From the NCBI GenBank assembly GCA_002269645.1, contig NIVC01000594.1, positions 434,001 through 498,000 on the forward strand: a DNA stretch of 64,000 nt, written 5' to 3'. Both the position numbers and the translations under genes were made by a program. This document shows positions 5,214 through 64,000 of the stretch, one piece after another. This stretch comes from Macrostomum lignano. Lineage: Eukaryota. Every line of letters begins with the position of its first letter. Position 1 is the stretch's first letter. The notes beneath the pieces were generated by a model. That model saw only the letters and a list, made by a program, of their open reading frames with translations. It ran no database searches and had not been told where the DNA came from.

Positions 5214-6445
5214 TGGCGCCACAATTAGTGTCAGTTTTGGCGCCACAATCAATGATAGTTTTGGCGCCACAATTAATGTCAGTTCTAGCGCCACAATCAA
5301 TGATAGTTTTGGCGCCACAATTAATATCAGTTCTAGCGCCACAATCAGTGTCAGTTTTGGCGCCACAATCAGTGTCAGTTTTGGCGCCACAATCAGTGTC
5401 AGTTTTGGCGCCACAATCAGTGTCAGTTTTGGCGCCACAATCAGTGTCAGTTTTGGCGCCACAATCAGTGTCAGTTTTGGCGCCACAATCAGTGTCAGTT
5501 TTTGCGCCACAATCAATGCCAGTTTTGGCGCCACAATTAATGCCAGTTCTAGCGCCACAATCAGTGTCAGTTTTGGCGCCACAATCAGTGTCAGTTTTGG
5601 CCACAATCAATGCCAGTTTTAGCCACAATCAATGTCAGTTTTGGCGCCACAATTAATGTCAGTTCTAGCGCCACAATCAATGCCAGTTTTAGCGCCACAA
5701 TCAATGCCAGTTTTAGCCACAATCAATGTCAGTTTTGGCGCCACAATCAATGCCAGTTTTAGCGCCACAATCAATGTCAGTTTTGGCGCCACAATCAATG
5801 TCGGTTTTAGCGCCACAATCAATGCCAGTTTTAGCGCCACAATCAATGCCAGTTTTGGCGCCACAATAAATGTCAGTTTTAGCGCCACAATCAATGCCAT
5901 TTTTAGCGCTACAATCAATGCCAGTTTTGGCGCCACAATCAGTGTCACTTTTGGCGCCACAATCAATGCCAGTTTTGGCGCCACAATCAATGCCAGTTTT
6001 AGCGCCACAATCATTGCCAGTTTTGGCGCCACAATCAATGCCAGTTTTAGCCACAATCAATGCCAGTTTTAGCCACAATCAATGCCAGTTTTAGCCACAA
6101 TCAATGCCAGTTTTAGCCACAATCAATGCCAGTTTTAGCCACAATCAATGCCAGTTTTAGCCACAATCAATGCCAGTTTTAGCCACAATCAATGCCAGTT
6201 TTAGCCACAATCAATGCCAGTTTTAGCCACAATCAATGCCAGTTTTAGCCACAATCAATGCCAGTTTTAGCCACAATTAATGCCAGTTTTAGCCACAATC
6301 AATGCCAGTTTTGGCGCCACAATCAATGCCAGTTTTAGCGCCACAATCAATGCCAGTTTTAGCGCCACAATCAATGCCAGTTTTGGCGCCACAATCAATG
6401 CCAGTTTTAGCCACAATCAATGCCAGTTTTAGCCACAATCAATGC
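5214..6445. repeat. Minisatellite, 24-bp unit GGCGCCACAATCAGTGTCAGTTTT grading into 22-bp AGCCACAATCAATGCCAGTTTT
   Basis: Direct reading; source of the 8-aa periodic ORFs 5085..6490. Confidence 0.95.
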
Positions 6446-6916
6446 TTTTTAGCCATAACAGTGCAAAATAAGCGAATGTTACAGAGCTAACATATAGTTA
6501 CTGACATAGCTAACATGTGATCTACGTAATAGTAAAGTTACATAGGTTACACTGTACGCTCGTAGAGTCAGCAGGTTTGCATTTTTCTTTTCCAAGTTCG
6601 AACTGCAAACGGAGCGCCACAAATTCATGCCCTGCAGGAAAGTCCCAAGATCTCTCTTGTTGCAGTGCAGTCGGGGTACATACGAATAATTCACTTTTTT
6701 TGTTATAAGGGAGGCTGATGCCTCGAACATGTACACGCGGTGTAGCAGATGATTGACTGGGGCATGCCGCTAACGGAGAGCGCAGAGACACGCCAAGTCA
6801 CTGCGGTGTGTAGTCAGCAAGGAATTGATGGATGTCTAGGCGAACAGACGCTGAAGAATCGGACAGAGGGTAAGAGAGACAGACAATTAATAGGATACGG
6901 CCGGGTATCGAAATGC

Positions 6917-7312
6917 ATAGACAGACAGACAGACAGGCAGACAGACACAGAAAGACAGACAGGCAGATAGACAGACAGACAGATAGACAGACACAGACAG
7001 ACAGACAGACAGACACAGACAGACGGACAGACAGACAGACAGACAGACGGACAGACAGACACAGAAAGACAGACAGGCAGATAGACAGACAGACAGACAG
7101 ATAGACAGACACAGACAGACAGACAGACAGACAGACAGACAGACACAGACAGACAGACAGACACAGACAGACACAGACAGACACACACACACACACAGAC
7201 GGACGGACAGACAGACAGACAGACAGACAGAGACAGACAGACAGACAGACGGACGGACAGACAGACAGACAGACAGACAGAGACAGACAGACAGACAGAC
7301 GGACGGACAGAC
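6917..7312. repeat. Compound (GACA)n microsatellite with GATA/GACG/CA variants
   Basis: Direct reading. Confidence 0.95.
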
Positions 7313-7887
7313 AGGGGGATGAAAACTAAAAAGCCTTGAGCAGCAGATTGCTTGTATTCGGAAAATACTCTATCCAGCCTCTGAAGTCCCGGTGTAATCC
7401 CACTGCCTATTTCCTTCACACGTTCCCCAGCGCTCCAACACCTGTTGCCAGGAGTGCAGAGCAGCCGGGGGGGGGTCTATTTCTATTCTGTTGGAGCAGC
7501 AAATCTGCTTTTGCACTTTCTTATACTCGTAGTTTCGGCTTTGATAGAAGACCTCGCACTGTGACGAGAAGTGGGGTCGGAGAGAGGTGAAGGGGAGCTG
7601 CAGGGTCGTTCGTTGGGCACACAGTGTCCATGGTCATAAATTTACAATCAAATGACCCTTGAAAAAACCTAGATAGCTCAGAGTCCTCTCCATCTTATCT
7701 TAGCTGCTGCTATTGCTGAACGCGCTGCTCAGACGCCATGAAGTTCCCAAGGGGATTGCTGATAGCTGCGTGCTGATCGTTAAGATATTCTCTTTTTGGT
7801 CGGAAATTCTGTCCAGTCTCTTTGACGAAATTTTATCTCAAAACGGTTCATTCTTACGATTTTCGCGTGCAGTAGCGAAATTAAAAT

Positions 7888-61608: not shown

Positions 61609-62358
61609 CATATCATACAAAACAAGCGCCAAGCGAACGCATATCCAGCATCAAAGCAGAATCAAATTAATAAAAAACTACAGAAATCTGGCTATAAAAA
61701 GACTCACCAGTCTCAAATTCTAGAATAGAATTTACAGTTCTGCAAGATAAAAAACTTTGTTAAAACGCCTGGCTGCTCCCGGGTCTGTGGGAAAACTGTG
61801 GCAGACAGAGACAAAGCCAAAATAAGGGCGAGTTGATCAAGCCGGGGCTCAAATTTTAAAGCCTCTTTGCTGACAGGTTCTGATAGGGTCTGGGAAGGAG
61901 AGAGGAAGAGGAGCTGGAAGGTTTGAGAAAAGAAGGGATCGAAAGATAAGCAAAGAGCTGCCAGACCTCGCTTCTCTGAGCTGTGGAGAATGGGGAAGGT
62001 AGCTTATATAGTTGAGATTGATTAAAAAATGAAGGTCGATGTCAATGCATGAGTCTGTGTGTATTTGGCCACTATTGCCTATGGAATATATGCTAATATA
62101 TGCTTAATATAGGGGATTGCGCCCCATCCTGCCATTGGTTGAACATGCAGCTCCCTATGCATGCGAAAATCCCGCCTGCAGATCCTTCGACCGCGTACAC
62201 CATCTCAAACAGGAAGGTGGGGATCTGGGAGGAGGCAAGTAAGGGAGAAGAAAATATATTATTAGTAAGAGGCGAGGTCTGAGGGTGGAGGGTTGGTGCT
62301 TCTGGAGGGGGCGGGGGGGGGGGTAATATCGATCGATTTTCGTCAGAGAAAGACATAG

Positions 62359-62397
62359 AGAGAGAGAGAGAGAGAGAGAGAGAGAGAGAGAGAGAGC
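62359..62397. repeat. (GA)n microsatellite
   Basis: Direct reading. Confidence 0.9.
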
Positions 62398-62779
62398 GGA
62401 ACTGCAAGTTAAACCGGGTGTACACTAATCCCTTCTGGCTGAGGGATAGGGATTAGTAAAGAGAGAGAGAGGAACAGAAAAAATCCAGAAGCCTTTAGTT
62501 AGTCAAAGACTGTACATAGCTATGGGCAGTGCACACTCACACACCCCCATGTCCTGCTGCTGCCGTACACTCAGTGAGCAAATTTATGAAGCAAAGATTC
62601 CAGAAATATAGCTTGTATGCGCGTGAGGGATAGAGGGAAAGGGAGAGAAGGCAAAAGCCGGGGGAGTCAAGGAGGTCACAAACGAAAAACTGGAGTAGGA
62701 AGGCAAAAGGTCGTAGAAGACCGACAAATAATCTTGATCGACCATTAAAACTCTGAATTAAACGTTTTGAGTTTAGCAT

Positions 62780-64000
62780 TTGGCGCTAAAATCTAGCCTT
62801 CTGTGGCGCTGAATTGGCACTAAAATCTAGCCTGTGGAGCTGAATTGGCGCTAAAATCTAGCCTGTGGAGCTGAATTGGCGCTAAAATCTAGCCTGTGGA
62901 GCTGAATTGGCGCTAAAATCTAGCCTTCTGTGGCGCTGAATTGGCGCTAAAATCTAGCCTTCTGTGGCGCTGAATTGGCGCTAAAATCTAGCCTTCTGTG
63001 GCGCTGAATTGGCGCTAAAATCTAGCCTGTAGAGCTGAATTGGCGCTAAAATCTAGCCTGTGGAGCTGAATTGGCGCTAAAATCTAGCCTTCTCTGGAGC
63101 TGAATTGGCGCTAAAATCTAGCCTGTGGAGCTGAATCGGCGCTAAAATCTAGCCTGTGGAGCTGAATTGGCGCTAAAATCTAGCTTTCTGTGGCGCTAAA
63201 TTGGCGCTAAAATCTAGCCTGTAGAGCTGAATTGGCGCTAAAATCTAGCCTGTGGAGCTGAATTGGCGCTAAAATCTAGCCTTCTCTGGAGCTGAATTGG
63301 CGCTAAAATCTAGCCTGTGGAGCTGAATCGGCGCTAAAATCTAGCCTGTGGAGCTAAATTGGCGCTAAAATCTAGCTTTCTGTGGCGCTAAATTGGCGCT
63401 AAAATCTAGCCTGTAGAGCTGAATTGGCGCTAAAATCTAGCCTGTGGAGCTGAATTGGCGCTAAAATCTAGCCTTCTCTGGAGCTGAATTGGCGCTAAAA
63501 TCTAGCCTGTGGAGCTGAATCGGCGCTAAAATCTAGCCTGTGGAGCTAAATTGGCGCTAAAATCTAGCTTTCTGTGGCGCTGAATTGGTGCTAAAATCTA
63601 GCCTGTGGAGCTGAATTGGCGCTAAAATCTAGCCTTCTCTGGAGCTGAATTGGCGCTAAAATCTAGCAAAATGGAGCTGAATCGGCGCTAAAATCTAGCT
63701 TTCTGTGGCGCTGAATTAGCGCTAAAATCTAGCCTGTGGAGCTGAATTGGCGCTAAAATCTAGCCTTCTCTGGAGCTGAATTGGCGCTAAAATCTAGACT
63801 GAGGAGCTGAATTGGCGCTAAAATCTAGCCTTCTGTGGCGCTGGATTTGCGCTAAAATCTAGCCTGTGGAGCTGAATTGGCGCTAAAATCTAGCCTTCTG
63901 TGGCGCTGAATTGGCGCTAAAATCTAGCAAAATGGAGCTGAATCGGCGCTAAAATCTAGCCTGTGGAGCTGAATCGGCGCTAAAATCTAGCCTTCTGTGG
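62780..64000. repeat. 31/34-bp minisatellite CTGAATTGGCGCTAAAATCTAGCC(TTC)TGTGGAG with 192-bp higher-order repeat (runs off window end)
   Basis: GTAGAGC marker at 63029, 63221, 63413. Confidence 0.95.

Follow-up and report, generated by a model that had tools for sequence, protein, structure and literature searches.

The window analysed here is a 64-kb stretch of the Macrostomum lignano genome (assembly GCA_002269645.1 (Mlig_3_7), contig NIVC01000594.1) in which several minisatellites of otherwise unrelated unit sequence share a short CpG-centred core. Tandem Repeats Finder (TRF) identified 41 separate arrays that make up 42% of the sequence and have unit lengths of 11-38 bp, together with a few tetranucleotide runs. 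The arrays are located mostly in introns and intergenic DNA. Arrays account for 19% of the other M. lignano loci that we sampled, and simple and tandem repeats for 15% of the genome as a whole (PMC5730564). The window is thus array-rich, yet not alien to its own genome.

The minus strand encodes an SH2-SH2-phosphatase (21177-26864), a 344-aa protein (30944-34176), a 588-aa CUB-domain protein (35363-56380, start codon at 56380) and a universal stress protein (Usp; 61270-60120, start codon at 61270). A thioredoxin/NDK (NME8-like) gene with an intronless open reading frame (ORF) is found on the plus strand (27335-29896). A minisatellite is present in most introns. The phosphatase and NME8-like genes are divergent with ~470 bp between their start codons (26864-27335), and this AT-rich interval looks like a bidirectional promoter (PTPN11/NME8). 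It carries neither arrays nor the core motif, and on this ground we rejected the core as a general promoter motif.

The consensus core is (A/T)TTGGCGCCA-N-AAT and spans 11-14 bp. With both strands considered, it constitutes half of the near-palindrome (A/T)TTGGCGCCAAA(T). The original prediction had listed core arrays with units of 16, 23, 24 and 31/34 bp, and TRF and the sequence itself place every one of them where it had been reported. First, a5210 (5198-6445, TRF 5210-6445, plus strand) comprises ~52 units of 24 bp (GTTTTGGCGCCACAATCAATGCCA) as judged by TRF and sequence. About half of this array carries a 21-bp unit with GCG deleted (TTTTAGCCACAATC), which predominates in its second half. 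The array a61317 (61317-61610, plus strand) has ~12 units of 24 bp (GAGGCGCCACAATCTGAGACACGA) with the same 12-mer as a5210 (GGCGCCACAATC) and begins 47 bp upstream of the Usp start codon. The first intron of the 588-aa gene is occupied by a54895 (54880-56222, TRF 54895-56219, plus strand), with ~55 units of 24 bp (GGCGCCAAAATT / AATGTGTGTGGCGCCAAAATTGAG). Its section 55500-56050 forms a three-unit higher-order repeat in which GGCGCCA is retained and the remainder of the units is altered. Upstream of the same gene, ~0.3-1.0 kb from its start codon, is a56829 (56690-57423, TRF 56829-57423, plus strand), with ~26 units of 23 bp (GGCGCCAGAATT / TTGGCGCCAGAATTGGTTTGCAA), where ~130 bp of degenerate units precede the main array. 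The array a62780 (62780-64000, TRF 62780-63993+, plus strand) has at least 37 units of 31/34 bp (GGCGCTAAAATC / TTGGCGCTAAAATCTAGCCTGTGGAGCTGAA) and extends past the end of the window.

The 16-bp array a32756 (32720-33066, TRF 32756-33066, minus strand) lies in an intron of the 344-aa gene and has ~19 units (TTTGGCGCC / TTTGGCGCCTTTTATG; GGCGCCAAACAT on the minus strand), with degenerate older copies at its left edge. Its orientation is opposite to that of the other core arrays. The array that had been described as reverse-oriented is real, but because the core is half of a near-palindrome, orientation is defined only for asymmetric units. A further 15-bp array in the Usp intron, a60447 (60444-60705, plus strand), has a main unit without the core (GCCCCTGGTGCTAAA), and units at its edge (GCTGGCGCCCCTGGT) carry GGCGCC. 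The paralogous array at another Usp locus, L131, is mainly of the GGCGCC form.

The 23-bp array a48044 (48044-48267, plus strand) has ~10 units (AGCGCCAAAATG / GTCAGATAGCGCCAAAATGAAGT, with variants GCGCCAAGCTA and GCGCCAAACTG). It had been predicted at this place and is present, but the prediction was incomplete, as the array continues with ~2.5 units at 43745-43806 (plus strand) on the other side of a Ty3/gypsy long terminal repeat (LTR) retrotransposon (43807-48043, plus strand, gag-pol ORF 43988-47290). The LTRs of 181 bp each (43807-43987 and 47863-48043) are 100% identical, and the element is bounded by the target-site duplication GTCAG. It splits the core array within an intron of the 588-aa gene, and a second copy, 99.7% identical, is found on another contig (L123). 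The gypsy element is not a source of the core; it inserted into a pre-existing array. We also rejected an origin of TGGCGCC from a tRNA 3' end or primer-binding site: there are no tRNA genes, the gypsy primer-binding site is TGGCGACGAGG, and the element is the intruder in the array. No known RNA families were found.

The sharing of the core is not random, as had been proposed. Our test set consisted of 39 consensus units from the window, and each unit's composition was preserved in the shuffles. The core occurs exactly in 4, with at most one mismatch in 5 and with at most two mismatches in 7 of the 39 units, against expectations of 0.001, 0.03 and 0.49, and none of 3000 shuffles matched the observed counts at any level. 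The 7-mer TTGGCGC is common to 6 units, whereas the shuffle maximum was 5 (6 of 1000 shuffles). Ten pairs of units have at least 12 bp in common with at most one mismatch, compared with 1.4 expected and a maximum of 4 in 60 shuffles. The arrays are otherwise unrelated, as the original prediction held: aligned on the core, the remainders of the units match no better than shuffled remainders (p = 0.68).

Within the window, GGCGCCANAAT has 77 copies on the plus strand and none on the minus strand, and all lie in arrays except for one at the degenerate edge of a56829. The 37 kb of non-array sequence contain no solo copy of the core motif. GGCGCC is not enriched there either (10 copies, half of them at array edges). 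Units of 23-24 bp are found in 5 of 7 core arrays and 5 of 32 others (Fisher p = 0.007). The units are also enriched in CpG-containing palindromes, with eight 6-mers against 2.5 expected (p = 0.0025) and five 8-mers against 0.65 expected (p = 0.0005). Their hairpin or inverted-repeat potential is not generally raised (5 of 39 at p < 0.05; mean stem 3.15 vs 2.78). A greater likeness of neighbouring than of distant arrays was rejected as weak (p = 0.055).

The core resembles an E2F/DP-type site, a likeness that the original prediction had pointed out and that holds at the sequence level against the E2F1 motif from SELEX, ATTGGCGCCAAA/TTTGGCGCCAAA (PMC5449588). The consensus (A/T)TTGGCGCCA(A/C/G)AAT shows 0-2 mismatches per array to the 12-mer SELEX motif. 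With respect to the E2F/DP site (TTTSGCGC, or palindromic WTTGGCGCCAAA), TTTGGCGC is present on one strand in four of the seven arrays, and the others are 1-2 mismatches from the 12-mer. Unlike normal E2F sites, which are single or paired promoter elements, the cores here form arrays of 10-55 units. Furthermore, position N interrupts the AAA run in three arrays, and the motif is missing from the window's bidirectional housekeeping promoter.

The GGCGCC core is the largest shared core in the window but not the sole one. A second core, (A)ATCTCACC, is found in four window arrays (1277-1776 and 2084-2883, both plus strand, 36239-36478 and 59028-59949) and in unlinked arrays of L132 (1-698, 3237-3748) and L131 (1430-1513). 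Members of this family have up to 15 bp in common across unit junctions. A third, GATTATCGAT, occurs in the arrays at 16388-17238 (plus strand), 53681-53908 and 59028-59949. The first of these (a16388) has a 38-bp unit that carries GTCACGTGAC in addition to GATTATCGAT. Additional linking families in the window are GATTGGnTAGAT, GATATTGG, CT-rich and GACA-type. GATTATCGAT is DRE-like and GTCACGTGAC is a perfect palindromic E-box of the CLEAR/USF type.

Related arrays in the window are co-oriented. Pairs with at least 11 bp in common lie on the same strand in 19 cases and on opposite strands in 2, compared with 44-46% same-strand pairs in shuffles, and both opposite-strand pairs stem from the palindromic core. 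The co-orientation is independent of the direction of transcription, as a16388 lies beside a plus-strand gene and the related array at 53681 (a53681) lies in a minus-strand gene. It is not absolute outside the window, where L132 and L125 hold inverted family members.

Ten further M. lignano loci were fetched via proteins from two homology searches. One of them, L124 (NIVC01000522.1:292875-314401), is the homeologous copy of window positions 49180-64000 and beyond, with unique flanks ~92-94% identical to the window. All 12 of 12 arrays are kept in the same order with identical consensus units, including a62780 (L124 7013-8038). Their copy numbers differ 2-4-fold between the homeologs: 12 in the window vs ~30 in L124 for a61317, 26 vs ~8 for a56829, 55 vs ~15 for a54895, 22 vs 72 for a49888 and 5.5 vs 20.5 for a53121. 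The arrays are therefore stable in position, older than the duplication and unstable in length. Past the window end, two genes, one for a G-gamma and one cathepsin-like, accompany an array of 20-bp units (GATTGGACTGTAAGCTCCAG) in L124.

The replication sample comprised 41 arrays from six independent loci, 128 kb in total. The core is present with at most one mismatch in 2 of 41 unlinked arrays (L125:15411, ATAAGAGACAGTGGCGCCAAT; L129:16092, GGCGCTAAAATGAGTGCCTGC), where 0.03 are expected, and none of 3000 shuffles reached this count. A third array (L131:11133) carries it with at most two mismatches, against 0.52 expected at that level. The enrichment over composition-matched shuffles, which had been suggested as a check, thus extends to unlinked loci. 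The GGCGCC core is found in 13-18% of window arrays and ~5% elsewhere. Comparison of units from the new loci with other units, from the window or the new loci, yields 41 pairs with at least 11 bp in common, whereas shuffles give 15-28. The ATCTCACC family is among these pairs. Since cores and shared units recur in unlinked loci, the core families are genome-wide in M. lignano.

Several units recur in full at non-homologous sites. The arrays a16388 and a53681, 37 kb apart, have a whole 34-38 bp unit in common, including GTCACGTGAC; 34 of 34 positions align with 1 mismatch, and the flanks are unrelated. At two unlinked loci (L132:1285 and L133:12408), a 28-bp unit matches at 27/28 positions without flank homology. 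Because whole units occur at non-homologous sites without common flanks, arrays or their seeds get copied. A related overlap lies outside the core: TAAAATCTAGCC belongs to the part of the a62780 unit beyond its core and makes up the entire 13-bp unit of the core-less array L132:4312. Descent with remodelling of units predicts such an overlap; nucleation at the core does not.

The Usp family also carries a recurring array. The paralogs in the window (60120-61270, minus strand) and L131 (10001-12067) have 58% protein identity, and each has an intron with a 15-mer array built of the same two blocks, one of the TTTAGC form followed by one of the GGCGCC form. These two introns are 11 codons apart and their other sequence is unalignable. 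Another intron of the L131 gene is filled by a 37-mer array. The family thus has three introns at three positions, each with an array, and the paralogs in L125, L129, L132 and L133 are intronless. The window Usp intron has its splice sites in unique sequence and not in the array. The intron arrays may indicate array mobility or array-linked intron gain.

We tentatively favor a reading, although it falls a little short of probable, in which the core arrays form one of several dispersed minisatellite families; its members spread through copying without flanks and diverge through remodelling, and the E2F-like palindrome is the hub that survives. Arrays or short seeds would be copied to new sites without flanking DNA, possibly via extrachromosomal circles or templated break repair, and would then reside there for long periods. 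Copy number would change fast, and the units would be remodelled by substitution, small deletions or insertions and the spread of variant units. The recognisable remainder would be the 11-14 bp CpG-centred near-palindrome that matches the palindromic E2F/DP site. Binding of a dimeric protein, or some other constraint, may be what preserves the hub.

Several observations weigh against this reading. A common ancestor of all core arrays is presumed rather than demonstrated, and no copying intermediates were seen. All members retain the same contiguous segment and nothing else; neutral descent should leave different ancestral parts in each lineage, so either the core is constrained or the ancestral unit must have been very short. 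The core is also unprotected in the arrays: no part of a5210 varies more than GGCGCC, a56829 shows CpG-to-TpG variants of up to 24%, and in a60447 GGCGCC is mostly replaced by TTTAGC. Finally, the replication sample is small, with its 41 arrays drawn from loci picked via one gene family.

The main competitor to dispersal by copying is that the motif itself gives birth to arrays. A protein, break or stalled fork at the E2F-like palindrome would trigger independent local tandem duplication, and each array would represent a single-copy site plus its local neighbouring sequence. This could account for why units with unrelated remainders and no transposon flanks share one contiguous segment as long as a protein footprint. 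The fit of the core to the palindromic E2F1 motif and the enrichment of CpG palindromes resembling dimer sites (GGCGCC, CACGTG, ATCGAT) point in the same direction. The core is also found in 5 of 8 arrays within ~1.5 kb of a known start codon and in 2 of 33 others, a post hoc and weak association. We nevertheless consider motif-driven birth unlikely. The 37 kb of non-array DNA and the PTPN11/NME8 promoter hold no unamplified solo motifs, position N of the core is A, C or G, and the E2F consensus TTTSGCGC is matched in only 4 of 7 arrays. Several arrays persist despite loss or decay of the core, and its loss from most units of a5210 and a60447 argues against a strict need for it. The non-core segment of a62780 recurs in a core-less array, and this reading does not predict unit lengths clustered at 23-24 bp. 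Whole-unit copies at non-homologous sites indicate that a copying route exists. The original prediction had the motif nucleating tandem amplification, and the flank-free copies are direct evidence for another route.

The core could also be kept by selection, however the arrays arose, if a gene profits from many copies of a transcription-factor site nearby, whether these act as platforms for enhancers or promoters or as sinks for factors. The arrays a56829 and a61317 lie directly upstream of start codons and a54895 is in a first intron, and array positions and units are conserved between the homeologs. The 15-mer array common to the 58%-identical Usp paralogs, in introns that are otherwise unalignable, is likewise consistent with regulatory selection. 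However, copy number differs 2-4-fold between the homeologs, the core decays within arrays, and some core arrays lie deep in introns (48044, L125:15411). We regard such selection as rather improbable.

To a similarly low degree, we entertain a motif-directed system in which a sequence-specific dimeric protein (E2F/DP-like, or a domesticated transposase or nuclease) would recognise CpG-centred palindromes such as TTGGCGCCAA. It would trigger local amplification or excision and reinsertion, and array insertions would also create introns. Intron creation is hinted at because the same two-block array is found in introns at different positions of the Usp paralogs and other relatives are intronless.

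A transposon origin, in which the core arrays derive from internal or subterminal repeats of one eroded mobile family (Helitron/Helentron, MITE or LTR element), appears very unlikely. It has precedents, as transposon carriers account for dispersed satellite-like arrays in oyster (PMC7492417) and plants (PMC7004042), and an unrelated metagenomic eukaryote has a 21-bp TGGCGCCAAAATTCAAATATA array inside a dispersed element of ~360 bp. In M. lignano, however, the spacers between the 41 arrays show no mutual similarity by BLAST, down to word size 7. When the two flanks of every array were compared, three short chance matches turned up, but neither inverted nor direct repeats nor target-site duplications. 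The nine core arrays have no junction words in common. By BLAST, the array-masked window matched six unlinked loci in nothing but Usp exons, the gypsy element and some small, unrelated dispersed repeats that all lie away from core arrays, and the sole transposon that touches a core array is the gypsy element inserted into it. A derivation from one transposon, which had been named as the conventional explanation, was therefore not found: the core arrays lack shared flanks, terminal repeats and target-site duplications.

One of the small dispersed repeats is ~150-250 bp long with 73-83% identity between loci (window 14917-15160; L125 12483-12677; L133 9188-9481; L123 1215-1381). It is probably a MITE or SINE and adjoins no core array.

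A metagenome scan for the tandem core returned at least 120 contigs, many with real arrays, with a search pattern that itself forces the core. At least 54 of these contigs represent the ~360-bp dispersed element of a single eukaryote, which holds about six of the 21-bp units. This eukaryote (L004-L122, e.g., L044, L008/L037 and L055) has 42-50% GC, TTTAGGG-type repeats and a great many tandem repeats. The tandem core pattern gave 3 matches in viral contigs, compared with 2, 3 and 4 for three control patterns. As the pattern forces the core and the viral controls are equal, no conclusion is drawn on recurrence of the core across organisms.

Chance and composition, whereby short words would be shared among 41 arrays and the best one picked, could account for the weak pairs (10-11 bp), which occur at chance level (16.8 and 5.6 expected), and for the viral matches, but this is hardly credible for the core itself, as no shuffle in 3000 matches either the window counts or the independent-loci count and none in 1000 reaches the sharing of TTGGCGC.

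Among known systems, the core-sharing arrays largely qualify as a minisatellite core family of the type that Jeffreys reportedly recognised in 1985, when human hypervariable minisatellites were said to have a common GGGCAGGAXG core. Both systems consist of dispersed arrays with units of 10-60 bp, here 16-34 bp in seven arrays in the window and two unlinked ones, and in both a 10-16 bp core extends across loci whose units otherwise differ. Copy number changes fast in the human family and differs here 2-4-fold between homeologous copies with identical units. Unlike the human core, the M. lignano core TTGGCGCCANAAT is a CpG-centred near-palindrome with A/T flanks and lacks the G-rich, chi-like character of cores tied to recombination hotspots or PRDM9. 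The M. lignano arrays are intronic or intergenic in gene-dense euchromatin (19-42% of the sequence), whereas the human arrays are mainly subtelomeric, and several cores coexist in M. lignano. Our literature search found no account of minisatellite cores in M. lignano. As far as this search extends, a core family with a CpG-palindrome core, intron-filling density, several coexisting cores and flank-free copies has not been described before for this species.

The arrays also resemble a satellite 'library' such as those of Tribolium (PMC4675708) and the Helentron-borne arrays of oyster (PMC7492417), with short related arrays scattered in gene-rich DNA, recurrence of a unit at non-homologous sites whose flanks are unrelated, and families linked by partial unit similarity. 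The M. lignano units are 11-38 bp rather than ~170 bp, however, and their relatedness is often limited to a short core. Unlike the oyster arrays, they have no detectable carrier element.

A third comparison concerns introns made of repeats. As in tandem-array introns, most window introns hold a minisatellite, and the Usp array introns occupy three positions. The window Usp intron differs in that its splice sites lie outside the array, and intron gain is a candidate. Introns that arise from or are filled by tandem arrays are said to have been described by Zhuo et al. (PNAS, 2007), and parallel intron gains in Daphnia were reportedly described by Li et al. (Science, 2009).

Other arrays in the window have features of their own. 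A 12-bp array (GAAGGAAGAGCA) inside the NME8-like ORF (29327-29847) encodes an (EEQK)n tail and is thus a coding minisatellite. One SH2-SH2-phosphatase intron holds an array of 21-bp units (23624-24350) that leaves the frame open, so that a single ORF of 520 aa spans this intron and two exons and can mislead ORF-based gene calling. The 16-bp array TTTAGGGTTTGTGAAG (10182-11420) holds a telomere-like TTAGGG/TTTAGGG heptamer at an internal site.

The question of why unrelated minisatellites have a core in common dates from 1985. M. lignano is an exceptionally dense natural experiment on it, as one fifth to two fifths of its gene-rich DNA is minisatellite and several cores are present. Its recent whole-genome duplicates provide internal controls, and the species is amenable to transgenics and maintained as a laboratory line. 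A role of the core as a protein site or copying signal would be directly testable in the animal. The arrays account for the known difficulty of assembling the M. lignano genome and are ready hypervariable markers. Because they lie in promoters and introns of ordinary genes, their copy number could influence expression or splicing.

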